Shown one piece after another: positions 1 to 17,940 of a stretch of DNA of 17,940 nucleotides. The number at the start of each line of letters is the position of its first letter. Positions within the stretch are counted from its first letter, which is position 1. Origin of the DNA: Amoeboradix gromovi X-113 (Eukaryota > Fungi > Sanchytriomycota); contig JADGIF010000137.1 of the NCBI GenBank assembly GCA_018985225.1, positions 1 through 17,940 of the forward strand. Direction: 5' to 3'. A program made the position numbers and the translations under genes. The notes beneath the pieces are model-generated. The model searched no databases. It was not told the origin of the DNA and was given only the letters and a program-made list of their open reading frames with translations.

Positions 1-77
1 ATTGGTGGTAACAATGGATTTCCTTTAATCGCGCAAATTTCGGCATTGTTTGATGAAGAGCTTCGAGTAAAGCCATT
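1..77 (+). repeat. Exact 77-bp direct repeat, copy 1 (identical to 14788-14864; may extend 5' of the window)
   Basis: ATTGGTGGTAACAATGG...CGAGTAAAGCCATT matches base for base at 14788-14864, then diverges (T vs G). Confidence 0.95.
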
Positions 78-1299
78 TGCAATATTTACTGATGCCCAGC
101 AACTATGGCGTTGGTGCGGTACTAACGCAAGGTGGAGAGCCAGTTTGGCTCACATCAAGGACACTAACACCTGCAGAAGTCAAGCACGACACTCGCGAGA
201 AAGAGTGCATTGCTCTTATGTACGGTCTTGACAAATTCAAGCCATGCTTCTATGGTGGACCAGTGACTGTATTTACAGATCACGGCAATCTAGGATGGCT
301 CATGGAGCACGAGCAGAAGGGAAGGCTGCCTCGATGGCAGCTGTTCCTGCAACAGTTGGACTTCCAAGAATCGTATGTGAAGGGCAAGAACAACCCTGTA
401 GCGGACTGTCTCAGTAGAGACCTCGTTACTGATGAAAATAGTGCTACAAGAGTAGCAGCTATTGCAACTGACAAAGATTCCAATACAGACTCTAGTACTG
501 CTAGAGTAAGGAAGACAAAGGTGGAAGTGGTAATTAGCAAGCCACTAGTCTTTGAAAAGATTAACTGGAGCAAACATCAAAGGAAGCATCCTTATATAAA
601 CCAGGTACCTCAGGACATAAAAGACCCTTTTCAGTAATGAATGGACTAGTATATAGACTAGGTCTTGATAATGAGAGAACAAAGCTAGTGGTTCCCAGTC
701 ATTTGGTGCAGCTAGTGATTAGAAAAGCACATGACAGTAAGCTGGCAGCTCATGATGGCGTCCGAAAGACTTGCTACAATCTGCGAAGCTACCGGTTTCC
801 ATCTTTCAGGAAGACCGTTGAGCAGTATTGCAAACAGTGCATTGCTTGCATTAATGCCAAAGGGTTTGGTGAGAGACACAGTGAGCTATCTACAAGAGAG
901 CCACTCGATATACTAGAGCGTGTGTACATGGAATTAGTGAGACCATTACCAAATGACACCAGCAGCTATGGCAATGATGCCAGATATATACTAACAATGA
1001 TAGATGACGGCAGTCGATATCTCAAGACAGCATCCATGCGGAACTGCAAGCGTGAGAGCATAATAAAAGAGTTCAAAGAACACTGGGTAGGTACATTCGG
1101 TATGCCGCATGCTGTGGCGACCGACAACAACCAGCAATTCAAAGGCGAGTTCTCAGATACGAGCAGGGATATGGGTATATTCCAGGAGTACACAGCACCA
1201 TACTCGCCAGAGATGAATGCAGTAGAGAGAGTGCATGGCACACTGATGAACAAGCTCAGAGCATTGAGATATTTATCACAGAAGCCATGGACAGTGTAA
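70..1299 (+). pseudogene. pol: Ty3/gypsy LTR-retrotransposon pol fragment (RNase H + integrase), frameshifted and truncated
   Basis: RNase H motifs KPFAIFTDA/SNYGVGAVLTQ (extra C in GATGCCCAGC at 91-100), EKECIAL, TVFTDH and GKNNPVADCLSR. Second frame break near 620-637. Integrase zinc finger AH...AHDG...CIAC. Core VYMEL (first D replaced by E), TDNNQQF and TAPYSPEMNAVER. Visibly more GC-rich than the flanks. No RT, gag or LTR seen. Confidence 0.93.
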
Positions 1300-2168
1300 A
1301 GTATTTTGTGAGGCTGGACCCACTTCCTGGTCCTTTTCCTGGTTTGCTTGCAAGATGTCATTGTTGTTAATGCTAATGCTCATAATAAGTAGATCATTTA
1401 TTAAAGAGAATCCGGCTAGTAATACCTAGAACTGGCACTGCGTGATAACCACGTGCGAGCCCCTATGTTAACTGATTAGTTCTCCGTTCCTGTACAAAGT
1501 CTTGTGACAGGGATTCGCCCGCAGGCCTTTGTGCCTAGCACAAGAACCCTCGTGTCTGAGACATTTATAGGGTCAGAACATCCCTCAAATGTCTTGATCA
1601 CAACATTCGAGATCTTCCTTCTGGTGTTGGGAGCTAACCTTGCAATACGTATATGACTTCTCTTTCTCTTCAGCATTACACTGTCGAAACAAGTGTCTAA
1701 CGTCATTGCTTGAATATAAGCAATTTTCACCTGGTTTCGTGATGTACTCCACTTTTCCTTTCCTCTGCCCATTATCGCAACTGCGCATCGGAAAAATCAA
1801 AGTCTTGACTGTAGCAACTCTGATAAACTTGGAATTCTTTCCATTTCGCATATTACCTCTACATTAAATCCCTTTAACACCATTTTTAAATGAAAATGAA
1901 ACGGAGTGTTGTATTTATGTGCACCGGAAATGCAGAAATACAATGAAGTTAAACTAAACAAATACAGTTTATTTAAATAGTTGTCTATTTTTGTAAATCG
2001 TTGACTAGACTTCATCGGTGCACTCTATTTGACACTTGTGGTTGGATTCATGATGTAGATTTTTACAAATGTGGTGCAGCACCAACCCATGAAGAATAGT
2101 TGAGTACCATAAAGAGCATCTGGCTAAAATTATATGGCCTAGGTATTAATGTATACCAAAATGGTTTA

Positions 2169-2244
2169 CTCCTCGTTAAAAGACTTGATTTCCGAGAAAA
2201 TCGAGAATTTCCACAGAGAAACTAGCAATGCTAGATCTCCGTTG
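2169..2244 (+). repeat. 76-bp dispersed repeat, copy A (68/76 identical to 12634-12709)
   Basis: CTCCTCGTTAAAAG-N4-GATTTCCGAGAAAATCGAGAATTTCCACAGAGAAACTA...TCTCCGTTG is present at both loci with no gaps and 8 mismatches. Confidence 0.92.
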
Positions 2245-3793
2245 TTACATTATGGAATCATTATATAAAAAATGGGATCAGTTATATGAGCAGAAGCTAC
2301 TTGATTATCCCAGGCATAATCATGTCAATCTAAACACCAAGATTAAGGATATAGTGTCTAGTATAAAGTTCAGAGATGATTTTGTAGCTGGAAATCATAC
2401 CAAAGTCCCTGACACTGGTGGTAATTATCTACTTAAAGGACCAAAGGGAAGTGGCAAGTCTTATGTAATGATTGGGATAGGTACTACTGCGATGTACCAC
2501 TTTAATAATGTTTTGTATGTCTATCACGATTATGAGAAAAAAGGGTTTAAATATCCATATGAATTGATCCTACTAGCTTTAAGGAAGAGAAAATATACCT
2601 GGAAAGAATACCTGCAGTCAATGTTAAATGAGAGACTGGGAATGATTGATTACGCAGACAATGATCAGTTTGAGGATTTACTCCGTACTTTATCTAGACA
2701 AGTCACTGTTGTATTCTGTGCAGATGAGATACAAGAGTTGTATGTTGCAGATAATGACGAGACTATACGTATTGCAAGGCAATTATTGATCATTGGCAAA
2801 TCTGTTCATCTAGCAATTGTTTCAGGTTCTAGCGCACAAATTGAGCAGCTAGCTTACAGGGATCCAGAGTCAAAGTACCAACACTTCCCCAACTTGAATC
2901 GCAGCTGCTACACAACTTTTCGCATTCCAGTAGTCAGAGACAGAGAAACATTGGGAGTAATGACTGGGAAAACAGGGTTAGAACTTGAATTATTATTCAA
3001 GTCGAGTGGAGGTATACCAAGGCGGTTTCAAAATACTGAACCACGTACTATCGATTTCAATGATCCTTTAGTACTCTTGATATTCACTAATATTGCGACA
3101 CAGATGACAGATAACATGAACGTCTTTGACTATCCATCACTTTCAATTCGTTTAACAAAAGCAGAATCTTTTAAAATGCAAGACAAGGAAATCGTTTATG
3201 AGGATCCACTGTCTGGTGCGTTGTCATTGTTGGTACCAGGTGACATGGATGAATTCATAAAGTTCACCATAGCAGTCAATGAATATGATGCATATAAACT
3301 GTTGTACTTAGCAAGTAGAGTCAGATTGGATATAAATGAGAATCGTAGTTTAGAAGGAAAGATATTGAAGCTATATGCCCGCCAAAAACAATTTGTGGTG
3401 CATGATGAACCCCTGGTACTTGCCAAACTGACTGGTTTAAATGAAAAGACGATATATCAATATAACAGTGAAATAGAAATTGATGGGTTTATGTTTACTC
3501 AAAAGTTTGTTTATTTTTTTCAAATAAAGGCATTGTCAAAGTATAGACAAAGTGATTTGGTGTCACTGCTTGGAAATGCAAAGTCAAAGTTCTTTCAAGG
3601 AAAAGGTGATGTCTTGAGAGCCATTCCTAATAGTGATAACTTGAAATTGAAGGTAGTATTTATTGTAAATGCCAAAGGGCCAGTGGAGTTAGAAATGGGT
3701 GAAAACATTGAAGTGGAGATGATTGTTGGTGATGCATATAATGCAATGTTTGGATTGTTGTCGATAGATCCACTGTTATGGGAAGCTGAATAA
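2228..3793 (+). CDS. P-loop NTPase fused to a C-terminal PD-(D/E)xK-like nuclease; Crinkler/RHS (CR)-effector-like architecture
   Basis: 521-aa ORF. Walker A GPKGSGKS (from G71), Walker B VVFCADE (D166), IVSGSS strand, GGIPR motif, and C-terminal IDG...FFQIK (D419, Q432-x-K434). The true start may be the ATG at 2252, because the first ATG lies inside the 76-bp repeat. Confidence 0.75.
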   Translation: MLDLRCYIMESLYKKWDQLYEQKLLDYPRHNHVNLNTKIKDIVSSIKFRDDFVAGNHTKVPDTGGNYLLKGPKGSGKSYVMIGIGTTAMYHFNNVLYVYHDYEKKGFKYPYELILLALRKRKYTWKEYLQSMLNERLGMIDYADNDQFEDLLRTLSRQVTVVFCADEIQELYVADNDETIRIARQLLIIGKSVHLAIVSGSSAQIEQLAYRDPESKYQHFPNLNRSCYTTFRIPVVRDRETLGVMTGKTGLELELLFKSSGGIPRRFQNTEPRTIDFNDPLVLLIFTNIATQMTDNMNVFDYPSLSIRLTKAESFKMQDKEIVYEDPLSGALSLLVPGDMDEFIKFTIAVNEYDAYKLLYLASRVRLDINENRSLEGKILKLYARQKQFVVHDEPLVLAKLTGLNEKTIYQYNSEIEIDGFMFTQKFVYFFQIKALSKYRQSDLVSLLGNAKSKFFQGKGDVLRAIPNSDNLKLKVVFIVNAKGPVELEMGENIEVEMIVGDAYNAMFGLLSIDPLLWEAE

Positions 3794-4256
3794 TATGTTT
3801 CTCTGTTCCTTTGCCAAATTGATAGCATCTGTACATTGTGAAGCAACTAGTATTGGTAACATAATTGTCCATGCAACGAGAGATTCAATTTATACCTCTA
3901 TTAACTGCTATCATTTGACGAGCGAACGTTCATTTCTTCGGCACAATTTCGTAATCTGGTGTCTGAGATCTCGAAATTCTACTCTTTTGCATTTTATTCT
4001 ACTACACCTTGGGAATAAAATGCACCTAATCTCGTATTCACGGAGTAATTGGTGTAAAGCCAATCCTAGTCTCATTTTCACAGTGCTAAAGCAGAGCTGC
4101 TTATATTATTAGACCATATTAAGACATTTGTTTTAATCAACACCAAACAAGGATCAATTGATACCTATAGATTACCTCTATTCGAAATAATCAATTTTAC
4201 TTTCGAAACTTTTGAGATAGTCTAGAAATCATTGTGTGCATCCCCAATGTTACCTG

Positions 4257-4469
4257 ATGATTCCACTTCTTGTTTTAACTTTCCTTTCTCAGTTACTGAA
4301 TTCGGTCAAAACTACATGTCCAGGACATCCTGCAGTATCACAAATGGAAGATGCGTTCAAGCAAGGTGGTCTATTTTGGCCAATGATTATAAAACTTCTC
4401 GATGTGTCTGATCTTGAGAAAATGGTGAAGTTTATTGGAGATCGGTGGGACCACAATCCTCTTTTCTAA
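4257..4469 (+). CDS. Possible small secreted protein (70 aa), unknown function
   Basis: ATG at 4257 gives a hydrophobic signal-like N-terminus (MIPLLVLTFLSQLLNSVKT). No recognisable domain; could be spurious. Confidence 0.25.
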   Translation: MIPLLVLTFLSQLLNSVKTTCPGHPAVSQMEDAFKQGGLFWPMIIKLLDVSDLEKMVKFIGDRWDHNPLF

Positions 4470-4522
4470 TTCAAGTAAACTAGTTGTCAAATTATTAAGT
4501 TGTTTGATTGATGGGGTATTTT

Positions 4523-4534
4523 AGTCTAGTTTTT
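4523..4534 (-). repeat. AAAAACTAGACT motif, solo copy
   Basis: Exact AGTCTAGTTTTT on the + strand, followed by ACA as in the transposon TIR copies. Confidence 0.8.
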
Positions 4535-5920
4535 ACATTCGATAGTCAATAAAAACTTTAAAGTGGAATATCTCGAATTGGTTTTTGAAGAGTTACTCCA
4601 TTTATTATATTTGATGTCCCATTTCATTAAATTATCCATAACTAAAATAGTATAACTGGCTGCCATACTACCCAATATTGCGATGAAGAAAATGATGAAA
4701 TGCCTGAATGCTCAGAAGCGTAACGATTACCTATTTAGCGTGATACAGGATTTTGTAGTTCTATGTTAAAAAGAGGAATGAAATTAATGAAAAAATCTTG
4801 ACTGCACGATTGACAGCTTTTATGAATACCATGCTTCCTTAGCTATAGGATACAGCCTAAACACTAGCTGGTCTAGTTGTACCTTTTGATGTCTCAAACA
4901 ACTCAATCTAAAGTGGGTTGCTACTCTTGAGACATGTTGAACTTCGTAATCATTGTACTCTCTTTGACAACAGAGAAATTTGTAACAAACGACAAGACAG
5001 TCACTGGAAGTGCATCAGCAGCTCTATCTTTTTGGTGCAGTGGGAGCTCTGTCTATGTTAGTACAATAAATTGCTAGATTTAATTTTGTTACTTTATTTG
5101 AGCTTTTTCGCCTTATTCTTACTACGTTGTGCTTTAGAATCTGGAATAATTTGGAATGCTTCACAAGAAGTATACAGCAGGAATAACAATAAAAGACAAA
5201 GAATAGATATCGATCATTATATGCCCATATGCATATCAAAAAGGTAGTCAAAACTGTGATTAGCAAGCCATATCAAGCAACTGCAATATCTCATTAAATA
5301 TCGTTCATCAGTCTTATGGCTCCAATGTGATGTAGCTACGAGTCGGAATTTGAAAGTGCGTTGTGGCAATCTACAAGTCATTACACGTTAAGTAAGCAGT
5401 AGTATTAGACATGAATAGCAAATAAGACAAGCTGGTAGAGGGCTGTTGGCTGAAGCATAGGTCATTTAATATGGGGAACTTCTACAGACTAGGTCCCCTA
5501 TTTTATTAGATTTCATAGTTTTTTGTAGTCTCGTCTTCATTGATTTTGGCCTTTGTGTTTACGCTGATACAGAGATTTAAACACATACGCGTTACACCGT
5601 TATAAAACAACTTCCTATTTAGCTTCAGCTTTCTTGAAGATGTGGGCAAACTCTCAGAGAATAAGGCTAAGTAGAACAAATTATCAGCAAGCATAAACAT
5701 GAAGAACTTCTCCCATGGAGTGGTTGTGATTAAGGAGACAGCCGCAATAGACGCTTGGGGTTATTTTAGTACCGAAACATACGCACAAGTATGAAGATTA
5801 CTCCAAATAACCAGCCTATTTAAAAGCGCTGAAGCTATTTACAATAAGATTTCCATTTGATTTATTCGAGAGATATCTAATCATGTCTCCCAGTTCTTAT
5901 ATGCCCATTGCATACTTTGA

Positions 5921-7117
5921 TCAATGCCTGATGCTAGATCCGATAGTCACTGAATGGCTATTTGCTGATTTACTCAAGTTCCTATTTGTAAAAGCTTTCT
6001 TAAGTCGACTGTTACTAATTACACTATTTAGGAGAGCGATATCAATAACACATCTGACAATAATTAATACCCATTCATATGCACTGTAATTATATTTGGG
6101 GAAATGATTTATGGATACCCGTGCTAAATCTGATACACCTTCTGATTGAAGATATATTGTAGAAGTTGATTTTCTTGTACTACTCTTAGATGTGATGATG
6201 CCTCTAGTTGACGTAGTTTTTGCAGTTGAATATTTTGGTAAAACACTTGTTACTGGATTGTACAATGCATTCATAGTGCATTTTTGAAGACCTGTGTCAT
6301 TCACATGCGGTAGAAGTGGGTTGTTGGATAAATCGCAATATGTTATTGCACTCGAATCAGTAAAGATAACTTCAGTGATTAAGTTATCATTTATACAGAG
6401 TATTTTTGGTCTAAATAGTGATAAAACCCCGGAAAACTGATTAAATCTGCTTGCTATCTCAGGATAAGGATATCCAAGATATAAGTTTTCCAAAGTGTTT
6501 GGAAATGCGGGTAGGGCTCCAGAGAATAAATTGTCGTCTATGTACAAAACTGTTAATTTGCTCTGCGAGATTTCCGGAAGTTTTCCGCTTAAGAGATTTG
6601 AAGACAGAGACAAACTCTCCAAAGTGGGTGGAACTGAAGGAAAATTCCCAGTAAGTAGATTTTTGTTTAGATATGCCTCTGTCAATGCATTTGGAAGCTC
6701 AGGAATATTACCAGTCAACTTGTTATCAAACAATCGAAGTACAAGTAAATTTGGGGTCGAGATTCTTGGAATCGTACCATTCAACGAGTTTGAATTTAGC
6801 TGTAACCTTCTCAGTTTGGAAGGCAAATTATCGGGGACTGCACCGTGTATGTCGAAGTTACTGTAAAGATAGAGGTTTTGTATCTCGGAGGTGATAGCTG
6901 ATTCATTGATAAATCCATTTAGTCCTAACGCAGACCACTGGATTTCTGTCACTCGTTGATTAACGCAAGTGATTCCAGTTGAAGAACCACAGCAATCTAG
7001 CTTAATTCTGTTCATTCGTACTCGTTGCTTAATATCCATATTTAACGTTGAAGCTAGATTTATCATATCGGGACAGTCAACAGATAATGAATAAGCGATA
7101 TAAAAAAATAGAGTCAT
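5921..7117 (-). CDS. Leucine-rich-repeat receptor-like surface protein (signal peptide, Cys-rich N-cap, LRRs, Ser/Thr stalk, probable TM helix, basic tail)
   Basis: 398-aa ORF. Hydrophobic N-terminus. DC...CC...GITCVNQRVTEIQW cap. Tandem LxxLxLxxNxLxGxIP repeats. CDLSNNPL C-cap. TTSTRGIITSKSSTRKSTST stalk. Hydrophobic WVLIIVRCVIDIALLNSVI followed by K/R-rich residues. Confidence 0.92.
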   Translation of the reverse strand: MTLFFYIAYSLSVDCPDMINLASTLNMDIKQRVRMNRIKLDCCGSSTGITCVNQRVTEIQWSALGLNGFINESAITSEIQNLYLYSNFDIHGAVPDNLPSKLRRLQLNSNSLNGTIPRISTPNLLVLRLFDNKLTGNIPELPNALTEAYLNKNLLTGNFPSVPPTLESLSLSSNLLSGKLPEISQSKLTVLYIDDNLFSGALPAFPNTLENLYLGYPYPEIASRFNQFSGVLSLFRPKILCINDNLITEVIFTDSSAITYCDLSNNPLLPHVNDTGLQKCTMNALYNPVTSVLPKYSTAKTTSTRGIITSKSSTRKSTSTIYLQSEGVSDLARVSINHFPKYNYSAYEWVLIIVRCVIDIALLNSVISNSRLKKAFTNRNLSKSANSHSVTIGSSIRH

Positions 7118-7259
7118 GATTACCTGAATTATTAAGTCGCGAGACAGACTTAAGTTTAACTGAAGTGTAGTTTAATTGGACAACAAAGCCATTGGCTGGG
7201 TCTGGTGACAATGACAACTCGAGCAATTTGTGGGCTTGGAAAACTGATAGAGATTATAT

Positions 7260-7287
7260 GGGACATGCTTGTAAAAACTAGACCAGA
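7260..7287 (+). repeat. Left outer terminal inverted repeat
   Basis: GGGACATGCTTGTAAAAACTAGACCAGA; reverse complement of 12388-12416 with 1 gap and 1 mismatch. Confidence 0.9.
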
Positions 7288-7337
7288 GGTAAAAAGCGGG
7301 TGACGAGATAGAGCCAATTGAAGTTTTTTCTCGACAA

Positions 7338-7373
7338 TACTCTGTAAAAACTAGACTTGGGTTGTTTCAGGTT
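7338..7373 (+). repeat. Left inner (subterminal) inverted repeat
   Basis: TACTCTGTAAAAACTAGACTTGGGTTGTTTCAGGTT; reverse complement of 12220-12256 with 3 mismatches and 1 gap. Confidence 0.9.
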
Positions 7374-7600
7374 CTGTCCAATGAATGAATGCTATTATAA
7401 ATTTATTATTTGAAGAATCTTATTTAACATTGGGAATGAGTTCGATTTAAAGGATTTGAGGCAAACTTTGTAAAAAGTAGTGCAAACAATAAAGGTTGTT
7501 TTCCAAAACTAGAATATCATTTTTTTCTAATTCTTTACTTCTATTTATTTGTTCATCATTCATTAAATTGCTACGATAAAGAATTAAAAGATGATAGAAT

Positions 7601-7870
7601 ATGGAAATATTAAAGTTATTCTATAGAGAACAAGATATTAAAAGTGTCTCTTTTTGTGAATTCAAAGAACAATTTAATTGTTACTTGTTTTTTGATCACC
7701 CATATTTCAAAGATGCATCATGTGTAGCTCGGAAAGTATGGAGAGATGAAATTATTAGATTAATCTATATCAAGCATGAAAAAATTGATGCTGGTGAAAA
7801 CGGGTTCACTTTTCCAGAATGCGGTGAACCAAAATTGAAAGTAATTGTAATAAAGTATTTACTTAATTAA
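7601..7870 (+). CDS. Small hypothetical ORF inside the transposon (89 aa)
   Basis: ATG-started, 89 codons in very AT-rich DNA, directly followed by AATAAA. No domain recognised. Confidence 0.3.
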   Translation: MEILKLFYREQDIKSVSFCEFKEQFNCYLFFDHPYFKDASCVARKVWRDEIIRLIYIKHEKIDAGENGFTFPECGEPKLKVIVIKYLLN

Positions 7871-8273
7871 TAAAAAATAAATATAAACCACCATTACTCT
7901 GATCACAATTCAAAGAGCATTTACCAACTTTATATGTTTTACCTTCAATGATAATAAAATGCTCAAGTCCATGACCTATTTTACAACACTCGCATAACAT
8001 TTTTTATTATTGGGTAAAAAATATTTTGTCTAAACTTGATTGGTTTATAACATTTTGTTCTATTTTGGAAGGCATAAAAACTTATCTCCAACCCAATTGG
8101 CCTAAAAATGATTCTTGCAAGTAAGAACATGATTGGTCAGCTATCAAAGTAAATAGTATAAGCATCAAGTATAAAATTAAGTAAGTAGTAACTTACTTGA
8201 CTTGTAGTGGGTCTACTTTCATTCGAATTCATTTCAACTCAGAACACTATTGGAGCAAGTACGTGTAGAAAGG

Positions 8274-8280
8274 TATAAAA
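8274..8280 (+). promoter_or_regulatory. Candidate TATA box of the transposase gene
   Basis: TATAAAA ends 25 nt before an ACCATG start context at 8303-8308. Weak evidence in AT-rich DNA. Confidence 0.35.
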
Positions 8281-8305
8281 TGACGTACGAACCATCTTCT
8301 TCACC

Positions 8306-10018
8306 ATGTCAATTACAAATCCTTTTCATTCTCAAGGATCAATATTTACACAGTCACTATCACTTGCAACATTAGGCTCTACAACACAACTATTACAAGA
8401 TAACGAAGAAGAAGAGCAAATTTCTGTCTTTAACAAACCAAGATGGTTAGCAAACTGTAAAAAGTTATCATGTTGCTCTCTTGAATGTCTGCAATTAGTT
8501 CCACAAGATATTTTAGCTTCCTTCTCAGATAAAATTCAGGTCCTTACAAAACAAGAACGTGATATATTCATCAAGGGTATTCTTACAGCTTGTGAAGTAA
8601 CAAGTTTATCTGTCAATGCTAAGAAACGATTCAAGTATTCTGTTTATCCACTAGGAAAAGTATGTAGAGATGCTATGACAACCTTACTAACCATCTCACG
8701 TCAGCAATTTCAAAATATCATAAATGATCTAGAAACCTTCAAGTCTAGACATCATGGTAATAAGGGTAAGATATTTAATCATGCTTTAACTTCTCAAGAA
8801 AAAGCTTGCATCAAAGAATGGCTTTTCAACTTTGCTGAGGTCCATGGCGAACAAAGACCTGGAAGAACTTGTCGATACAAACAAACCAGGAGAACAAGAG
8901 ACATTGTTCTGCTCTGGTTGCCTTCAGACTTTACCGTTATCAAATTACACCATATCTACTTGAGCTCCGAAAATGCTATTAACACCCGATTTGAGACTTT
9001 TAGAAGGTTATATCATGATTGTGATAGCATAAGAGTAAGATCACCTAGAAGTGACATGTGTGATACATGCGCTGAATTCAAAATGAATTTATCAATAGTC
9101 GAGACAGAATCAAGTTTACTAAGTACTACAAAGGAATTCCAAGATCATTTAAGACAAGCTAAAGTAGCTAGGATAGACTATAATAACTGCAAGACAAGAA
9201 TTAGAACAACTACCCTTTCTTTTGACTATAGTCAGAATCTATGTCTCCCTCAATTGAAAGATCAACCTTCAGAACTTTACTTTCTATCATTGTTGAATAT
9301 CTCTTTACTTGGGATTCATAATGAATCAATTAGGAAACAAGTGAATTATATTTACAGAGAAGATATTGGAAAGAAAGGTAGTAATAATGTAGCAAGTATG
9401 TTAGTTGACTACATCTACAGACTTCCTGAACAAGCGAGAAGATATCTAGTTTTATTTGCAGATAATTGTGTTGGACAAAACAAGAATAATACTATTATAA
9501 AGTTACTTTGCTGGCTTTGCATTTCTGGAGTATGTGAGTCCATTCAACTTACCTTTATGATTAAAGGCAACACTAAATTTAGCCCATACAGCTGCTTTGG
9601 TCATATCAAAAAGAAATTCTATACTCAAGATGTGTACACTGTAAGTCAAATAAAAGAGGTGGTGGAATCATCTTCTACTTCTAATAGCAAGTGCATCGAA
9701 TTCCTTGGAAAGAGATTTAAAGAGTATCGTTCCAAGTTGGATACCTTTTTCAATGATGTTCCAGGTATTGCGGGCTATCAATCTTTTTCATTTAAATCCA
9801 ATACTCCTGGTAAAGTAGTGTTGAAAAGGTTAATCAATGATCCATCTGTTCTAGATACTATAATATATCTTAGAAAAGAGTGTCAGTTGAGTGTAGAGGA
9901 GTATGCATTTCAACCTGAAGTGTTAGAACCACCTTCTCTCACAGAGAGAAAGAAGAAGGATTTGGGGAAAGTTAAGAAATACATGCCTGAGAACTTGAGA
10001 GATACTTTGTTGTTGTGA
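8306..10018 (+). CDS. Sola1-type DDD transposase, probably catalytically impaired
   Basis: 570 aa. N-terminal CC..C and VCRDA..LL.IS motifs, SDMCDTC...H, LSFDYSQNL.LP (D307), ELYF, GKKGSNNVASM and LFADNCVGQNKNN (D386). FMIKGNTKFSPYSCFGHIKK stands where the family has GHTKFxPDxxFG. Confidence 0.88.
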   Translation: MSITNPFHSQGSIFTQSLSLATLGSTTQLLQDNEEEEQISVFNKPRWLANCKKLSCCSLECLQLVPQDILASFSDKIQVLTKQERDIFIKGILTACEVTSLSVNAKKRFKYSVYPLGKVCRDAMTTLLTISRQQFQNIINDLETFKSRHHGNKGKIFNHALTSQEKACIKEWLFNFAEVHGEQRPGRTCRYKQTRRTRDIVLLWLPSDFTVIKLHHIYLSSENAINTRFETFRRLYHDCDSIRVRSPRSDMCDTCAEFKMNLSIVETESSLLSTTKEFQDHLRQAKVARIDYNNCKTRIRTTTLSFDYSQNLCLPQLKDQPSELYFLSLLNISLLGIHNESIRKQVNYIYREDIGKKGSNNVASMLVDYIYRLPEQARRYLVLFADNCVGQNKNNTIIKLLCWLCISGVCESIQLTFMIKGNTKFSPYSCFGHIKKKFYTQDVYTVSQIKEVVESSSTSNSKCIEFLGKRFKEYRSKLDTFFNDVPGIAGYQSFSFKSNTPGKVVLKRLINDPSVLDTIIYLRKECQLSVEEYAFQPEVLEPPSLTERKKKDLGKVKKYMPENLRDTLLL

Positions 10019-10121
10019 AATTGAGATTGAAATTAAATAAAGGATTTTTACAATACCCTAAATATCGTACCATAGCTATATATCTTGATTTTTACCCAAA
10101 CAGGTAAAACATATTTTAAAC

Positions 10122-12026
10122 ATGCAAAAGAAAGATAGGATTCTAAGCTTTAAAGAAGTATTTGTCTCAACTGGGCAATCAGAGAATCAATCTATACCAT
10201 TGAGTCAACATGATGTAGATGAGTTAACAAAGAAAATGATTGATGCAGCAGCTCTCGGTGACTTAAATCACAATGACAAAAGTATTTTGGCTGCACTTGT
10301 ATATAGATTGAAGGAGCCAAAGTTAATGAAGTCATCCAATCTAAAGAGCGAAACCTATAAAACCTACAGTTACCCTGAAAGTTTTCCAGGATGTTTCGTT
10401 AATCACTCTTGTAAAGCTGAAGATAAATCACCAGCTATGGTACAATTATATAGAGGCAAAGAAGAAGATGATGATTCTCTAGATGTCTATGTCTGTAGAA
10501 CTGATCCGTATGAGAAGCTCGCTGACCATATTACTAACTTTGGATATGCTTATTTCTGCAGATTAAATGAAATAGAAATAGCAATTACCAAAATCATAGA
10601 AGATAAAGTGATTGATTACACCGTATTTTCTCCAATGCCAGAATGTTTTGTACCAAATTCACATTTCTACCAAAATACGGACAACTCATTAAAAAGAGTT
10701 ACTGTAAATGATAAGGATTACTTAGATCAGGTGTTGAAATTAGCGAATTCAATTCAAATTGTTAGAGAAAAAGCAATTTCCAATTATCCTGACTCTATTT
10801 CATTTAACATCAAATCCTTTTATGATAGCGTATATACTCATACTTTGTCATGGACTATGAAGTCAAAAGTAGCCCATCTTGCAACCAATCAAAAAGAATA
10901 TTGGAAATCACCTTGGTTTAACCACTTGGATGGCCTAGTTAGGGATTGCAAGAATAAAGGGACAAAAGGCATCCTAAATGGTTCATTATTATTCCATGAT
11001 ATCATTGAAATGCATTTTAGAGTTATTGATCTTTCGATTTTAAAGATGGCCAAGGAAGCAGGCATAAAAAATGTAATTCGTAGAGGCGACACTTTAGAAT
11101 TCTTTGCCCTGTTGATCGATGCTGATATTTCAAAATATATTAAATTGAAGCTTAAGAAGGTATTGAGTGAGTTCAGATTGAACTTGAATGTTGGTAGTCA
11201 GTCAAAACGCGACGGATTAAAGACTGCACTTCAATATGATAAGGAGCGGTCCAGTCTTGATGTTCTGAACAATGCAGGATTTGATTTACAACTAGCAGCT
11301 CATGTAGTTTTGGCCAAAGTAATCGGTAATGAATACCCTCCGAACCTTCTATATAAAAAGGAGATGTCTACCATTCCCACCCTATTTGCTCATATAATAG
11401 CTCACAACAAATACAATAATCAGTCCGACGATTTGCTTCGACATTGTTTGATCATGTTTCCACAACATTGGCAATACCAAACCACAGTTCAATCCCTTCA
11501 CTATATTTGGTATGCAATATGTAAGGGGCTCCCAAAGACATTCGATCTTTCACACTACAAAGCAAAGACACTTGAGAATGTATTAGAGACATGTGCAGGG
11601 TTTGAGTACCCTTTAAATGCATTGGTTGGCCTTTATAATGCAATTAGTACTAAATCAACTAAAGTGGAAGTAATTTGTAACGATAAGATATTTGAAGATG
11701 AAAGTCTTGCTGTTATTAGGACTATAGACTACGCGAAAGCTATTCGAATAAGAATAGAAGGTGAAATAACAGAAAACGACCAAAAAGTGAAAGCCTTATT
11801 AAAATGCTTTGAAGATGAAGGACTATATGCAACACTGGACAAAATTGAAATGTATACACATCAAGTAGTACTGAAAAGCGGAAAAGGAAATTGGCCTAAA
11901 ATTAAACTGTATGAACCGACAGAGTGGTATATTGAACAATGGGATTCAGAAGAAGGTGCTTTACCTGAAGAATTTATTGAATCCATGAAAAAATTCGAGG
12001 TAAGTATTAAGCCGGTAGCACAATAA
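10122..12026 (+). CDS. Degenerate reverse-transcriptase-like protein of the bacterial Abi/UG (AbiK/AbiA/Abi-P2/DRT) type; transposon cargo
   Basis: 634-aa intact ORF with ordered motifs: FNIKSFYDSVYTHTLSW (cf. DIxxFYxSIYTHxIxW), FNHLDGLV, TKGILNGSLLFHDIIEMHFRVID (cf. TxGIPxGxxxSxxxAExxxxxID), IRRGDTLEFF (cf. YRYVDDxxIF) and LSEFRLNLN (cf. LxxxxLxLN), followed by a helical-looking region. Confidence 0.8.
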   Translation: MQKKDRILSFKEVFVSTGQSENQSIPLSQHDVDELTKKMIDAAALGDLNHNDKSILAALVYRLKEPKLMKSSNLKSETYKTYSYPESFPGCFVNHSCKAEDKSPAMVQLYRGKEEDDDSLDVYVCRTDPYEKLADHITNFGYAYFCRLNEIEIAITKIIEDKVIDYTVFSPMPECFVPNSHFYQNTDNSLKRVTVNDKDYLDQVLKLANSIQIVREKAISNYPDSISFNIKSFYDSVYTHTLSWTMKSKVAHLATNQKEYWKSPWFNHLDGLVRDCKNKGTKGILNGSLLFHDIIEMHFRVIDLSILKMAKEAGIKNVIRRGDTLEFFALLIDADISKYIKLKLKKVLSEFRLNLNVGSQSKRDGLKTALQYDKERSSLDVLNNAGFDLQLAAHVVLAKVIGNEYPPNLLYKKEMSTIPTLFAHIIAHNKYNNQSDDLLRHCLIMFPQHWQYQTTVQSLHYIWYAICKGLPKTFDLSHYKAKTLENVLETCAGFEYPLNALVGLYNAISTKSTKVEVICNDKIFEDESLAVIRTIDYAKAIRIRIEGEITENDQKVKALLKCFEDEGLYATLDKIEMYTHQVVLKSGKGNWPKIKLYEPTEWYIEQWDSEEGALPEEFIESMKKFEVSIKPVAQ

Positions 12027-12219
12027 ACAATTTACTAACACATTTTTAATCTCACTCGATACGTGCAATCTTAACACATGGGATACCGAATATAAAAAAA
12101 CTATACAATATTTATGATTCGGTCTACTAAAACTGACGTAGTTTTATATTTGATGTTCACTTTGATAGCATCACTTTATTACTAAGTAAATTTTCTGAAG
12201 TCAAGACTTGATTGACTAA

Positions 12220-12256
12220 AACATGAAACAACCCCTAGTCTAGTTATTACAGAGTA
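12220..12256 (-). repeat. Right inner (subterminal) inverted repeat
   Basis: AACATGAAACAACCCCTAGTCTAGTTATTACAGAGTA pairs with 7338-7373. Confidence 0.9.
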
Positions 12257-12387
12257 ATAGTGATATTTTATTTAAAACCATTATCGTAAAGCTAGTAATT
12301 ATCCCACCACATTAAAATAAAGACTAGATGAAAGAGTAAGAGAAAAGCTGTACAGAACATTTATTTTTGAAATTTCGATACAATTTG

Positions 12388-12416
12388 TCTAGTCTAGTTT
12401 TTACAGAGCATGTCCC
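12388..12416 (-). repeat. Right outer terminal inverted repeat
   Basis: TCTAGTCTAGTTTTTACAGAGCATGTCCC followed by ATAT; pairs with 7260-7287. Confidence 0.9.
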
Positions 12417-12633
12417 ATATGGTAGCATTGAACATACTTGAAATACGTACAATTTGCCAAAGGGAAGTGGTGACATTCTCTTAAATCCAGGAATTTCAAT
12501 GAGGAATTGATGTAGTTGCAATCCATTAACATTTATATAACTGATGGAGCGGATAATCGCCATGTTTTAACAGATATGCCATGAGGAAGAGACTCAATTT
12601 TTATATGCTTTCAGTGTCTAACACAAAGAAGAG

Positions 12634-12709
12634 CTCCTCGTTAAAAGTCCAGATTTCCGAGAAAATCGAGAATTTCCACAGAGAAACTATCGGTACTAGG
12701 TCTCCGTTG
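12634..12709 (+). repeat. 76-bp dispersed repeat, copy B
   Basis: 68/76 identical to 2169-2244, same orientation. Confidence 0.92.
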
Positions 12710-12849
12710 CAGTGATTGCTCACGCTTTCTCTACCCTGAGGTGGGATTGAATAAGGATGCAGATACTTGATGTATATGTTCCTTGGTGCCATGTGGTCCA
12801 TGTCCACTTCCAAATGACACTATCTTCATGAATAGCTCTCCAAATTGGT

Positions 12850-14883
12850 TTTCTTTAGAGTGCCAAGTATTGTACATGGCATCGAATTTCCGTGTTTGGA
12901 CCAGCTTATCAGTCTGAGACGAATCTATGCTGTACCTGCTAGTTATTTCTTTAGAATTGATTTACCATTTGTGAAAAGGAAGAATATCGAGTATTTGAGC
13001 TATTAGAAAAATCTGGAAAAATCATGAAATTATACAAAAATGCATACAAATTCGCAATAAATGATTTATTCAAGAAAACAATCGAGCTGTACAATGCTAA
13101 GCACTCCAGGTGAGCTTTACCCCTACCAACTTATATTGTCCACACGTCCAGATACGCATCAATTATGCAGCAGTCTATTCAGAGAGCTTTCATAATAGGA
13201 GAATTTGAAAGCTCAATAATTAGTGCTTTAGCAAGGTTTATCACGTCTGAACATTTCATAGATATAGTATAAAGCAATGCTGCAAAGAGGAAAAGTGATG
13301 CTAGTCTCAAAACCATCTAAGCTATTTAGACGGGTTCTCATTTGATTGATGATCCTACGATCTAATTCGCTAAGACGTTCTAGAATTGGAAAGTTGTCGA
13401 GCTTGCTGTTGTTGGGTGTGGTTGCCTTCAGGGATTGCAGTAGAGTAAGAAAGATAAATTGACCAAGAATGGAGGCATTTTTAGTTGGTGATTGCAACTG
13501 CAGGGAATGTAGAGAAGTAGATTATTACTCTTAAGTAACTGAAAATTGTAAACGATGTGGCTAATAAATCCGATTGCTGCATAAATATAAGTGATAGTGA
13601 CGTCTGATGGCTAGTGCTGCATTGAAGGGACAGGATGCATTTATGAGTGCAAAGTTGAATTGCAGTGGGAGTGTATAATGAGTGTGATTTTTGGTGATTT
13701 TTCTGGAATGGCAAACAAGAGCAATAAATTGTAACAATTAATAGCATTTGAAATAACTTCTAGTTGCTTGTTGTATTGCTACTTTTAGTTGAATTTGGAC
13801 TGAATTGCATTTATTTTTGTCTTTCATAATTACATTGAAGAGAGCTCAATACCCAACAAGCAACTAATTTGAGATGGTTACCCATGTCGCAAGTCTGATT
13901 GTAAGCATGTCTTATAATATCATGAGACTCGAATAGATCTGAATCACATTATGACTGTTATAAATGTACAAGTTTATGGTTATACCCAAATTTTGCGTTC
14001 CTTTTGAAACTTCAGATTTGGGAAAATGCATCCACGGATGAGCGTGACATGGCTCCAGGTGTTACTGAACCCTTGCAGTATTGAGATATAACAAATTTGT
14101 AGGAAATGCTTTACTTCCTATTGAAGATGGTCTACTAATTGATAACGAAATTTATTTCACAACTCTCAACAAAACAAAAGAACCAATCGTTTCTGAATAC
14201 ATCAAGAACACTGATGACTTCAGTAATGTTAAATATATTAGTGAGTCAGAAGTTTTCAAGGGTGATAATCGACTAGAACTGGTTCAATTTTTATTGAAAG
14301 AATATAAAATTCAATGTGCTATCAAGCAAAAAGATTCAAATCTTGAGAAGGCGATTAACAAGGTTAAAAATCTGATCTGTGCTGGGATTGATAAATTATT
14401 TACCGACTCTATCAATAATATTGAAGGGATATTGCAGTTAAAGTCGGTTACAAAGAAGACTAAAGATGAGTTACAGATATGCTTAGATAAACTTCGTAAA
14501 ATGAAAAAGACTCATGGTCGGAATGTCTTGAACAGATTCTAATTGGTGATTCAACTTTAACGAATAAACAAGATTGGAATAATGTAGCGCCAAGCTTCAA
14601 TAAAGCAGGTCTGACTGTCTGACAATTTGTCTTGAGTACATGAATAAAGTTAATTACACCAGGGAATCTTCAAATGCTCTTTTAAGCAGAGTTTGCACAA
14701 GAGCAGTGTTTTGGCAAATTGGAGCAAGCCTTTGTTCACGACGAAAGACGTAATATAGAGCGAGCCAAGCGTGAACTCGATAAGAAAATTGGTGGTAACA
14801 ATGGATTTCCTTTAATCGCGCAAATTTCGGCATTGTTTGATGAAGAGCTTCGAGTAAAGCCATTGATGGATATAAATAAATGA
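12850..14883 (+). pseudogene. Degraded protein-coding gene of unknown family (5' boundary approximate)
   Basis: Protein-like stretches in shifting + frames: 12961-13270 (FTICEKEEY...FIDIV with one stop), 14081-14542 ORF, ECLEQILIG...NKAG, TICLEYMNK...NALL, and AEFAQEQ...LRVKPLMDINK ending at TGA 14881-14883. Its 3' part is duplicated at 1-77. Confidence 0.5.
14788..14864 (+). repeat. Exact 77-bp direct repeat, copy 2
   Basis: Identical to 1-77. Confidence 0.95.
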
Positions 14884-15141
14884 TTTTCATTCAAATTACT
14901 TTGTTCTCAGAAAAAACTGATAAACATACCTAAGAATATAAGATACAGCGACTGTCTTTTGTATTAACATTTAAGATATTCAAAGAAGACAAAGGTCAGC
15001 CAATCGATTAATTTAGTCGAGATTTTCCAAGAACTCCAAATATATTGTTAAATCAGTAATAATTTTTGTTGAGTAGGCAACGAAGTTTATCAGTAGAGAA
15101 ATTCTTGTTCGGAAGATAAAATCAACATATTAATACGTTTA

Positions 15142-16245
15142 TTAACACCAGGCATATTTCTTAATGTTGCCCCATTGCTTTTCTTTTGGTCTTACAGCTG
15201 GCCAAGAATCGTTGAGTGTGGTATTTGTCAACTTTGGATACTCATAAGTCCACAATACTATTTTGGGAATGTCGGCTTCATAAGCATATTGTTGGGCGAT
15301 CCTAAGAAGTTCCATCCGCAGTTCGGATTCTGTTGTATCGGATTCTCTACTTATGTTGGTAACTAGATCTAAAATTGCAACATGTTTATATTCCTGAATA
15401 TCGCCGTCTTGCACATTTTCAGTGCTACTCTTCTTATGCAATAGACTCGTCCATAAAATATAACCATACGATCCATCTGGCTTGCTAGTATACGCACCAA
15501 TTCTCAGATGTATTTTAATCGGTACAGCGCCCTCATGATCTACTCTCATTAAGTCACATTTGTATTCTGATGCATTGGAATTCACAGTAATGTCCAGTGA
15601 TTTCCGAGAACACTCAAAGTTCCATGTAGCATTTAGTTCACTCATAGAGCAACTAGGTTTAATTGCAGTACATCTGTAGAATAATTCACGACTAAACGGA
15701 AAACTGAGAACAGTGGTATCATTTATAACTGAAAATTCACAAATCTTGGTATTGATCATGTTTAACTTAGATATGCATTCTAAATCACCCAGTTTTAAAT
15801 ATCTGATCTTTTCATTGAAATTTGAAGCGTTTAAAACGCAGCCTTGGCCTTCGAATGTACGATAATCAAACTTGTTGTAAAAATATTTAACATCCGAGAA
15901 TAACACTGACTTTATGTGATATTGGTCCATTAAGCAAGTCAATTTATCAAATAACAAGGTAGCATAACCTTTTTTACGATGTTGTTTTGGGACAAACACT
16001 GAAGCAATCGACCAAATATTCTCCGTAGAATTGCCAACAACTGCTCTTCTGATATACACCTCCAATGAAGCAACAATAAAACCGTCCAGTACTAGACCAT
16101 ATGGTACTATATGTTGGAATTGGCGACAAAAGTGCTCTCTTTTTGTATATTGCTGGATAGTTAATTCAGCACCCCATTCTTCTTTATTCTGGATCACAGT
16201 TTCCTGATGCTCATCATGGTTGAGTCTTTTGAATGAGATAGTCAT
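15142..16245 (-). CDS. GNAT acetyltransferase, fungal LYC1-like lysine N-acetyltransferase family
   Basis: 367 aa. WG..LT..QY..RE, IVASLE, IASVFVPKQHRKKGYA (acetyl-CoA-binding motif A), SVLFSDV..FY and C-terminal W.N.KKYAWC, as seen in LYC1-like proteins. Confidence 0.85.
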   Translation of the reverse strand: MTISFKRLNHDEHQETVIQNKEEWGAELTIQQYTKREHFCRQFQHIVPYGLVLDGFIVASLEVYIRRAVVGNSTENIWSIASVFVPKQHRKKGYATLLFDKLTCLMDQYHIKSVLFSDVKYFYNKFDYRTFEGQGCVLNASNFNEKIRYLKLGDLECISKLNMINTKICEFSVINDTTVLSFPFSRELFYRCTAIKPSCSMSELNATWNFECSRKSLDITVNSNASEYKCDLMRVDHEGAVPIKIHLRIGAYTSKPDGSYGYILWTSLLHKKSSTENVQDGDIQEYKHVAILDLVTNISRESDTTESELRMELLRIAQQYAYEADIPKIVLWTYEYPKLTNTTLNDSWPAVRPKEKQWGNIKKYAWC

Positions 16246-16280
16246 AGGGAGAGTTTAGTCGCCAAGATGTCTCACCTCAA

Positions 16281-16301
16281 CAAATACAAAAACTAGACTA
16301 A
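16281..16301 (+). repeat. 21-bp perfect inverted repeat, left arm (pairs with 16653-16673)
   Basis: CAAATACAAAAACTAGACTAA vs TTAGTCTAGTTTTTGTATTTG; contains the 12-mer motif. Confidence 0.85.
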
Positions 16302-16509
16302 CTTTCTGAAATAGTTTGAATCATTATTTCAAGTGCGTTAACCAATAGTAAATTAAATTAATCTGACTGGTTCAACTAAGTTATTTTAGTATAAAAGCTT
16401 TTCGTCCATCAAAATCTTAGAAACAATAACTAATAAGAAGAAGAGAAAACAAAAAATAATTTATAGAAATGGTGGCAAGAAGAAAAAGAAAAAGAAAGAT
16501 AATAGTGGT

Positions 16510-16840
16510 AAAGTACTAGATAATGCACCTTTTTCTTACACTCAAAGACCTTATATATTGAAAGATGGGAATGACATTAATGAGAGAAAATTGGTTTGAA
16601 AGAAGGACTTTTATTAATTTCCTCTTTATGGTGCACCTCCATTGAAAACGACTTAGTCTAGTTTTTGTATTTGGTGCCACAAATGAAACATTATGAAAAG
16701 CAAGTTTTGCGACAATAGATCTCATAAAATCAGCAATTATGACCCTTTTTGATGCAATTAACTGAAAAGCGGGATGCGAACTAGCTATTATTCTCTTCAT
16801 TCTTGGCGTCCATAAAATAGCAAATATGAGGGAACTCTAA
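16510..16840 (+). pseudogene. Probable IS630/Tc1-like (DDE_3) transposase remnant
   Basis: VLDNAPF...FPLYGAPPLKTT*SSFCIW in one frame resembles DNAxxH...LPPYSPxLNPIExxFxxW. Several stops and frameshifts. Confidence 0.45.
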
Positions 16841-17026
16841 ATTGTACAATATAATAGGAGCCCAGAGTTCTCCAAATAGCTGAAGAGATGGTGGAAACCT
16901 GAATTAATTAACTCTCCAGAACGAGAACTATCCAAAACGTACTATTGTATAAACTACTCACATTGTGTGACGAAGGAAATTCTGCAGGTGCACTGATTCA
17001 CAGTTAGTGTGATTTAATTAAATTGT

Positions 17027-17521
17027 TTACTTAAAAAAGGAATCACTTTGATTATTAAATTTTTTACGCTTATTTCTGAGAGTGTCCTCTTGACACTCAG
17101 GCCTATGCAGATCATGTTTGATAAGCGTAACAGTAGACAACTCGGATCTAGTCGATGTTATGTAATCCTGAAACACTTTTAGATTATTGTTTTGAGCAGC
17201 TAAATTCTGTAAATACCGTTCTTTTTCATTTTCTAACTGATATGTAAGTTTAATGTTTTTGTGAATTCTTTCCTTAATTTGTACATAAGTTTTCTGCAAA
17301 TTCCTTCGTTCATCACGAGAAAATGAGTTTTCCTTAACTATCAAGTCCATTTCTCTTTTTAAGCTTTTAATCTTTGATTTCTGTTTAAATATGTTCTGTT
17401 GGATTACATCCACTTCGACAGATTTACATTCTATCATTTCTGGTAATCTTTGTAGTTCTTTCTGAGAAATTTCACGTAAACGACTGTGGGAATGGCCCAT
17501 TACACTTGAAACCAAAATCAA
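17027..17521 (-). CDS. Hypothetical coiled-coil protein (164 aa), possibly secreted
   Basis: ATG-started ORF with K/E/Q-rich heptad-like composition and a short hydrophobic N-terminus. Confidence 0.55.
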   Translation of the reverse strand: MILVSSVMGHSHSRLREISQKELQRLPEMIECKSVEVDVIQQNIFKQKSKIKSLKREMDLIVKENSFSRDERRNLQKTYVQIKERIHKNIKLTYQLENEKERYLQNLAAQNNNLKVFQDYITSTRSELSTVTLIKHDLHRPECQEDTLRNKRKKFNNQSDSFFK

Positions 17522-17808
17522 ATTTCATTAACTTTACATGAAGAGCTCTGATTTGTTAAAAAAGCAAGAATTTCCTCAAATAAACTGAGAAAGCCGGCCA
17601 ATTTATTGCAGGGGTTCCTCTCGCTTTTACGTACCTGAGGTCTGATTGAATAATGATTCATATATAATATGCTCATTGCCGCCATTATCTGAGGTCCGCT
17701 TTTCGTCCAGTTTGAAAACAAACTCTCTACAGCCGTTACTTAGACAGTCTCACGGCATCATGCGCGGCAATTGAGAATACAGTGTAACTACTTGGACTCC
17801 TCATGCAT

Positions 17809-17940
17809 GGGACACCAAATATAAAAACTAGACTAACTCGTTTTTAAAGGAGGTGCTCCATATGGAGGAAATGCTATCATTAATAAAAGATCTTCTTCTA
17901 TTATACCAATTTTCTTTCATTGATTGTATTCCTCTTTTTA
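17809..17940 (-). repeat. Diverged inverted copy of 16561-16680 (second IS630/Tc1-like remnant); runs off the window end
   Basis: Aligns over ~120 bp with the reverse complement of 16561-16680, including an 8-bp indel. The minus frame reads LLLMIAFPPYGAPPLKTS*SSFYIW. Three differences across YGAPPL are synonymous (GGT/GGA, CCA/CCT, TTG/TTA). Confidence 0.8.

Follow-up and report, generated by a model that had tools for sequence, protein, structure and literature searches.

Class 1 Abi/UG reverse transcriptases (RTs), among them Abi-P2, DRT6 (UG12), DRT4 (UG15), AbiK and AbiA, are treated as enzymes of prokaryotes and phages. Eukaryotic hits were removed from the UG/Abi dataset of Mestre et al., in which rvt (UG37) is the sole eukaryotic link mentioned (PMC9226505), and a 2025 preprint links telomerase to UG RTs. 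A gene of prokaryotic ancestry is also known from eukaryotic DNA transposons: Fanzor1, a homolog of bacterial TnpB, was captured by Sola and four other superfamilies (Bao and Jurka, 2013; PMC3627910). Here we describe a 5,157-bp putatively Sola-type element of the fungus Amoeboradix gromovi X-113 (Sanchytriomycota), which carries a transposase gene (open reading frame 1, ORF1) and a second gene, ORF2, encoding a 634-aa RT-like protein. The element lies on contig JADGIF010000137.1 of assembly GCA_018985225.1, and the 17,940 nt of forward strand that we analysed (positions 1 to 17,940) are called the window below. We consider it probable that ORF2 is a passenger of this element, that it is a member or the sister of a eukaryotic Abi/UG clade of prokaryotic descent and that it is likely non-catalytic.

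ORF2 shares with the bacterial and phage class 1 proteins a fingers-palm fold followed by a C-terminal helical region, and the motif FYxSxYTHxxxW straight after motif A; they are its best sequence, profile and structural matches. ORF2 differs from them in being eukaryotic, in lying in a DNA transposon rather than in a defence island or prophage, in lacking two of the three catalytic Asp, the invariant Arg and the invariant Lys, in belonging to a separate clade and in scoring far below curated thresholds. Fanzor1 on Sola is likewise a gene of prokaryotic ancestry placed as second ORF in a eukaryotic transposon with terminal inverted repeats (TIRs), and an element with the same TIRs in this genome holds a Fanzor-like fragment. 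The two cargoes differ in protein family: Fanzor, an active RNA-guided nuclease, is found repeatedly in different elements, and the RT-like protein, which looks catalytically dead, was found in one element lineage. The rvt genes, which fungi and other eukaryotes possess, are likewise non-retroelement relatives of prokaryotic UG RTs. By their description they are set apart from ORF2: rvt is single-copy, has an N-terminal coiled coil and performs protein-primed synthesis in vitro, whereas the ORF2 family is multi-copy, matches class 1 best and lacks catalytic residues, and ORF2 itself does not match Pfam RVT_1.

A literature search found no paper on class 1 Abi/UG homologs in eukaryotes; no word starting with 'transpos' occurs in the sanchytrid genome paper. 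The first-pass annotation of this DNA, made from the sequence alone, knew of no description of such a system, and we also found no published account. What is novel is that a known prokaryotic RT class has a eukaryotic branch with a degenerate active site, and that one member of this branch sits in a Sola-type transposon. This clade, with at least 12 paralogs in A. gromovi and a consistently altered active site, is a second eukaryotic offshoot of UG-type RTs, beside rvt and the proposed telomerase link.

Homology and predicted fold of ORF2

Over residues ~180-420, ORF2 matched the PADLOC models Drt6 (4.8e-16), UG30 (3.5e-14), AbiP2 (6.5e-14), AbiK (8.5e-13) and Drt4 (4.2e-12), and a plain phmmer comparison with the solved Abi-P2 chain 7r08 gave 5.3e-6. 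In Pfam, ORF2 had no match, and no RVT family appeared even at E up to 10. The PADLOC E-values of true prokaryotic neighbours reach 1e-97 to 1e-194, as against 1e-16 for ORF2, and the scores of ORF2 against the curated NCBIfam models were below cutoff (Drt4, 39.2 bits vs 450; Drt3b, 29.6 bits vs 350). When ORF2 was used as the query of a word-indexed protein search, ORF2 itself was the sole match.

An AlphaFold model of ORF2 built on an alignment of 121 sequences had a predicted template-modelling score (pTM) of 0.70. The predicted local distance difference test (pLDDT) was mostly 75-96 in the core (~120-360) and 54-66 at residues 171-200; this version superseded an unusable model built on 12 sequences (pLDDT 40). 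The Foldseek comparison that the first-pass annotation had proposed returned RT folds, and the best 20 matches were all DRT6, UG15/DRT4, Abi-P2, AbiK or AbiA (E 1.9e-11 to 3.8e-6), followed by DRT2, DRT9, retron, diversity-generating retroelement and group II intron RTs. The 50 structural matches listed by Foldseek included no long terminal repeat (LTR), long interspersed element (LINE), Penelope or telomerase RT.

The signature F(Y/F)xSIYTHxIxW follows motif A in ORF2, where it reads FYDSVYTHTLSW at residues 233-244. Of its residues, H240 is invariant in the 121 aligned sequences, and Y238 and W244 are conserved in at least 90%. All four ORF2 motifs quoted in the first-pass annotation were found, in the order given there. 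Its assignment of ORF2 to the prokaryotic Abi/UG RTs rather than to the RTs of eukaryotic retroelements agrees with the PADLOC, 7r08 and Foldseek matches and with the missing RVT match. We conclude that ORF2 is a true homolog of class 1 Abi/UG RTs.

A eukaryote-only clade of RT-like genes

Besides ORF2, the A. gromovi genome contains 12 or more RT-like ORFs (300-660 aa), all of which match the same PADLOC models; their identity to ORF2 is 17-24% in the multiple alignment and 24-33% over local matches. When 1.84 billion representatives were searched exhaustively with a profile, 3,431 matches were obtained, which fall into two tiers. The top tier comprises ~27 proteins at 1e-33 to 1e-149 and is followed by a plateau near 1e-30, which consists of true AbiP2, Drt6 or Drt4 proteins (1e-97 to 1e-194 on the PADLOC models), including those of an Actinomycetaceae bacterium and the archaeon Methanohalophilus. 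The named members of the top tier are from Sanchytrium tribonematis, two of them (P0028 and P0058) in tandem on one contig (NODE_457), and the unnamed members lie on eukaryotic metagenome contigs. Neighbouring genes of the metagenome members encode DNA polymerase epsilon, ABCE1/RLI, an IFT122/WDR35-like protein, ribosomal proteins L34e and L37ae, Ctf4/Mcl1 and Arf. At the two of these loci that were searched for a transposase, none was found. One member, P0015, is very close to the A. gromovi paralog on contig C1152, indicating that an uncultured close relative of Amoeboradix has been sequenced.

In phylogenetic trees, 19 eukaryote-tier rows formed one clade, with a support in the Shimodaira-Hasegawa-like approximate likelihood-ratio test (SH-aLRT) of 86 in the tree of 121 rows and 98 in the tree of 51 rows. 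ORF2 has a very long branch and was placed in an eight-row subclade in the free trees (support 97-98). In the approximately unbiased (AU) test on 51 rows, a tree with ORF2 outside the other 18 eukaryotic rows was not rejected (p=0.66); in the best such constrained tree, ORF2 was sister to these 18 rows with no prokaryotic sequence between. Thus, the affiliation of ORF2 with the eukaryotic clade holds in free and constrained trees, and its exact position does not. The AU test does not separate a nested from a sister position, so that capture of a resident paralog by the transposon is putative.

The family is a eukaryote-only clade of ~20 or more genes, most of which are ordinary chromosomal genes. 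The first-pass annotation had proposed that a bacterial defence RT was acquired and mobilised by a transposon; as stated, this does not fit the grouping of ORF2 with mostly chromosomal eukaryotic genes. In our trees, ORF2 groups with the eukaryotic clade, apart from the prokaryotic tier. As judged by the distribution of the family, the clade would descend from prokaryotic polymerases of the Abi-P2/DRT6/DRT4 kind. Its gene number has risen in sanchytrids and in a closely related uncultured organism, for the most part through ordinary chromosomal genes. ORF2 would then be a passenger gene derived from within this class 1 RT-like clade or from its sister lineage.

Adjacent same-strand pairs of RT-like genes are frequent in both sanchytrid genera, as on C218 (L036, 3643-6461) and C897 (L037, 4444-8398) of A. 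gromovi and on Sanchytrium NODE_457. Several family members occur in compact eukaryotic contigs of metagenome ERZ28573637 and the derived assembly GCA_043777775.1 (L042, L044, L045 and L046). In the 658-aa paralog P0002 (C908, L033, 2010-3983, minus strand), the RT-like region is followed by a domain of the ubiquitin family (PF00240, 6.7e-9; residues 481-544).

The transposon and its cargo

The ends of the element are inverted repeats of 28/29 nt, which differ by one indel and one mismatch (coordinates in Table 1). ORF1 and ORF2 lie on the same strand, 103 bp apart. We compared the flanks of those complete TIR pairs that could be retrieved, five of which are described here. Identical 4-bp flanks were found at three: ATAT at the window element, AAAT at a 292-bp miniature inverted-repeat transposable element (MITE) on C1152 and AGAT at a 3,972-bp element on C689. 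The flanks of the fourth pair differ at one base and those of the fifth (C681) are mismatched, ATAT versus AATT. Since the matching flanks of three elements have different sequences, ATAT is a real target-site duplication and not a part of the TIR. The coordinates, the pairing of the TIRs and the flanks thus agree with the earlier description of two co-oriented long ORFs enclosed by TIRs and ATAT, and ORF2 is located within a transposon whose boundaries are marked by the TIRs and the target-site duplication.

ORF1 matched DUF7869, a Pfam family spread across eukaryotes, and its neighbours in the Atlas are eukaryotic DUF7869 clusters of arthropods, molluscs and Zoopagomycota. It has ~80 matches in the genome, most of them broken. 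Our literature search found DUF7869 mentioned in no paper, and in 2017 the RNase H-like domains of Sola had no Pfam model (PMC5751038). The window element shows a feature of Sola in being TIR-bounded with a 4-bp target-site duplication. Such a duplication was reportedly given as a defining Sola trait by Bao et al. in 2009. We draw the label Sola-type from the TIRs and the 4-bp duplication, and the equation of DUF7869 with Sola1 is putative. As the architecture suggests, the TIRs and the subterminal repeats of their core motif are presumably the binding sites of the DUF7869 transposase; this enzyme would excise the element and reinsert it at A/T-rich 4-bp sites, and ORF2 would move only because it sits between the TIRs.

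The closest transposase-bearing copies in the genome (77-88% protein identity) lack ORF2 or carry other ORFs. In two of them (C766 and C418), the alignment jumps from 1-31 bp past the ORF1 stop (about 10019-10049) to the terminal 64 bp on the right (12356), with 22-38 unaligned bases between. An obligatory role of ORF2 as second transposon gene is ruled out, because these closest copies lack it.

The cargo segment (~10050-12181) has only two other matches in the genome, on C1089 (88-89% identity) and C732 (78%). Both include the 3' end of ORF2, and C1089 also has the full right arm and TIR; in both, homology ends near 11800, at the inserted terminus of a different element from this family. The flank of C1089 beyond ATAT differs from that of the window. 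Since the ORF2 3' end occurs at two further loci, one with a different flank, the RT-bearing version was probably inserted at more than one locus, which suggests that the RT-bearing element has transposed. The search for other copies with the same cargo, as proposed in the first-pass annotation, thus found the ORF2 3' end at C1089 and C732 and no ORF2 in the closest transposase-bearing copies.

Other copies carry other passengers. The C781 copy has a 589-aa P-loop ORF after the transposase instead of ORF2. In the C567 copy (transposase 77% identical), a 573-aa ORF (L026, 1451-3169) lies between the left TIR and the transposase; it matched DUF3990 weakly (0.0023) and had no match in PADLOC. A 3,972-bp element (C689:22719-26690; L047) has the same TIRs, an AGAT duplication and no transposase; its ORF, with a Cas12f1-like TNB domain (2.2e-5, just under the Pfam cutoff), is a TnpB/Fanzor-type fragment. 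The same TIR family therefore carries a Fanzor-like gene and probably P-loop genes. The first-pass statement that descriptions of Sola elements normally include only a transposase does not hold, given these passengers and the published capture of Fanzor1 (PMC3627910). Within a small fungal genome, this Sola-type family moves several genes whose ancestry lies in prokaryotic mobile elements or defence: RT-like, Fanzor-like and possibly P-loop NTPase genes.

A 521-aa P-loop ORF with a weak AAA_22 match is present in the window at 2228-4112; it is 25% identical (E 7e-14) to the 589-aa ORF of C781 (L027, 2329-4095). Near it, at about 4524 (4524-4548), is a reversed TIR core. The region 2228-4548 could represent another element of this TIR family that bears cargo.

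It is also conceivable, if unlikely, that the Abi-type gene entered sanchytrids, or first spread in them, on Sola-type elements, and that the chromosomal paralogs are later immobilised copies. The sister position of ORF2 in the best constrained tree, which was not rejected, would agree with such an order of events, as would the movement of other bacterial-type genes, such as Fanzor/TnpB, by the same TIR family and the presence of two other paralogs (C1105 and C908) within 2 kb of diverged transposase homologs. However, at each of the three loci (window, C1105 and C908) the RT-like gene is oriented differently with respect to the transposase, and no TIRs enclosing the C1105 and C908 pairs were found, the flanking termini being outward-facing or absent. 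The closest transposase relatives lack an RT-like gene. Several family members have housekeeping genes as neighbours, and at the two loci searched for a transposase none was found.

Three further loci were not upheld as RT-bearing elements. The C1105 and C908 pairs are not supported as RT-plus-transposase elements, given the missing enclosing TIRs and the differing orientations. The RT-like ORF on C1152 is ruled out as cargo; the nearby TIRs belong to the separate 292-bp MITE upstream.

Loss of active-site residues

We read the alignment columns that are at least 88% conserved in 100 prokaryotic-tier sequences in 20 eukaryote-tier proteins. ORF2 keeps the structural positions H240, W244, G283, G287, E296 and R320 and the first Asp of motif C. 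Four residues present in 100% of the prokaryotic tier are replaced in ORF2: Arg at ORF2 position 120 (retained in 0% of the eukaryote tier; Leu in ORF2), the motif A Asp at 229 (65%; Asn), the second motif C Asp at 324 (0%; Thr) and a Lys at 359 (40%; Ser). Thus, in place of the catalytic Asp of motif A and the Asp-Asp of motif C, ORF2 has N229 and D323-T324. In DRT6-9, mutations in the catalytic domain of the RT abolish immunity (Mestre et al.; PMC9226505).

Because residues invariant in prokaryotes are lost, two clade-wide and four in ORF2, the protein-primed polymerase activity implied by the first-pass annotation is unlikely. As far as can be judged from sequence, the whole clade, and ORF2 most of all, probably lacks DNA polymerisation. 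The clade would have kept the fold and the structural motifs and lost residues of nucleotidyl transfer, ORF2 having lost the most. If ORF2 acts at all, it would most likely be a non-catalytic binding or scaffold protein and not an RT. As a natural collection of pseudo-polymerases, the family lends itself to the question of what role the fold has when catalysis is absent.

Several points weigh against the reading of ORF2 as a likely non-catalytic passenger from a eukaryotic clade. The putative loss of polymerase activity is deduced from the residues of predicted proteins. There is a single full-length ORF2-bearing copy in the genome, and no public RNA runs exist for this organism. A ratio of nonsynonymous to synonymous substitution rates (dN/dS) of ~0.8 on the fragment common to C1089 is uninformative about constraint on ORF2, because the C1089 partner is a broken remnant. 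The proximity of the C1105 and C908 paralogs to transposase homologs hints at a wider association. Further, ORF2 has a long branch, and its nested and its sister position are both compatible with the AU result, so that capture of a resident paralog stays putative.

That ORF2 is a functionless passenger turning into a pseudogene seems quite improbable. Its terminal branch is the longest of its subclade, its active site is the most eroded, the one full copy is accompanied by two broken ones, and the dN/dS is ~0.8; on the other hand, 634 codons without an internal stop stay open in sequence of 34% GC, where the other five frames have 31-76 stops, and the structural core motifs are still conserved. 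We would put forward only as speculation, and with considerable reserve, that a fungal lineage recast the bacterial Abi/DRT polymerase fold into a large and fast-evolving, non-polymerase (or unconventional) family of genome conflict, and that a Sola-type transposon either imported the gene from bacteria or now carries a copy as a counter-defence or addiction module. It is more doubtful still that ORF2 and its family have retained nucleotidyl transfer of an unconventional kind and, like their bacterial relatives, serve in defence against viruses or transposons. The retained fold, the kept structural positions and the first motif C Asp would allow such an activity, and the family is expanded and fast-diverging with tandem pairs, as is typical of conflict genes, but the residues invariant in 100 prokaryotic-tier sequences are missing.

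Contiguity and other features of the window

The assembly (10.5 Mb) contains 205 copies of the 25-nt TIR core and none of the reversed control. Many copies are at contig ends, indicating that the assembly breaks at the TIR repeat. In the output of a second assembler, a single 2,128-nt contig spans 9916-12043, that is, the end of the transposase gene and the whole of ORF2, and separate contigs bridge 6900-7344 and 12401-12634, that is, both TIR-flank junctions; these contigs derive from one public DNA run, probably of the source sample, and are not independent data. Read depth was ~21 over ORF2 and ~23 in the left flank. These contigs argue against a chimera. Despite a fragmented assembly (1,319 contigs) with breaks at TIR repeats, a chimera or bacterial contamination joining the RT-like gene to the transposon is scarcely credible, given these contigs, the similar depth of ORF2 and the left flank, the uniform GC content and the two further loci at which the ORF2 3' end adjoins this right arm.

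Table 1. Positions of the features of the RT-bearing element in the window
Feature	Position	Strand	Evidence or remark
Left 4-bp target-site duplication, ATAT	7256..7259	.	Same ATAT directly outside both TIRs
Whole element	7260..12416		5,157 bp
Left TIR, begins GGGACATGCT	7260..7287	+	Pairs with 12388-12416
Left subterminal copy of TIR-core motif	7337..7361	+	Inverted-repeat pairs I2 and I5, partners 12233-12256 and 12391-12411; probable second transposase-binding site
ORF1, 570-aa DUF7869 transposase, Sola-type by architecture	8306..10018	+	Pfam DUF7869, 1.2e-19
Cargo segment, no counterpart in closest transposase-bearing copies	about 10050..12181	+	Comparison with copies C766 and C418
ORF2, 634-aa Abi/UG class 1 RT-like protein, degenerate active site	10122..12026	+	PADLOC, PDB 7r08, Foldseek
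ORF2 codon 229, Asn where motif A catalytic Asp is expected	10806..10808	+	Asp in 100/100 prokaryotic-tier sequences
ORF2 codons 323-324, Asp-Thr where motif C has Asp-Asp	11088..11093	+	Second Asp in 100% of prokaryotic tier, 0/20 of eukaryote tier
ORF2 3' end and right arm, repeated at two further loci	11802..12420	+	C1089 88%, C732 78% identity; both interrupted by nested insertions
Right subterminal copy of TIR-core motif	12233..12256	-	Inverted-repeat pair I2, 24 nt at 92%
Right TIR	12388..12416	-	Pairs with left TIR; core repeated genome-wide
Right 4-bp target-site duplication, ATAT	12417..12420	.	Matches left copy

Further TIR cores are present to the right of the element. A forward copy at 16289 and a reverse copy at 16656 (16289-16665) would fit a MITE of ~380 bp; one more forward copy lies at 17824, near the window end (17824-17940). 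The depth of Logan contigs is very high at 12613-12800, indicating another repeat immediately right of the element. At the left end of the window, positions 77-1299 hold a fragment of a Ty3/gypsy-type retrotransposon. Its RNase H domain (2.1e-22) is followed by the zinc-binding domain of an integrase, and the integrase core was matched below threshold.

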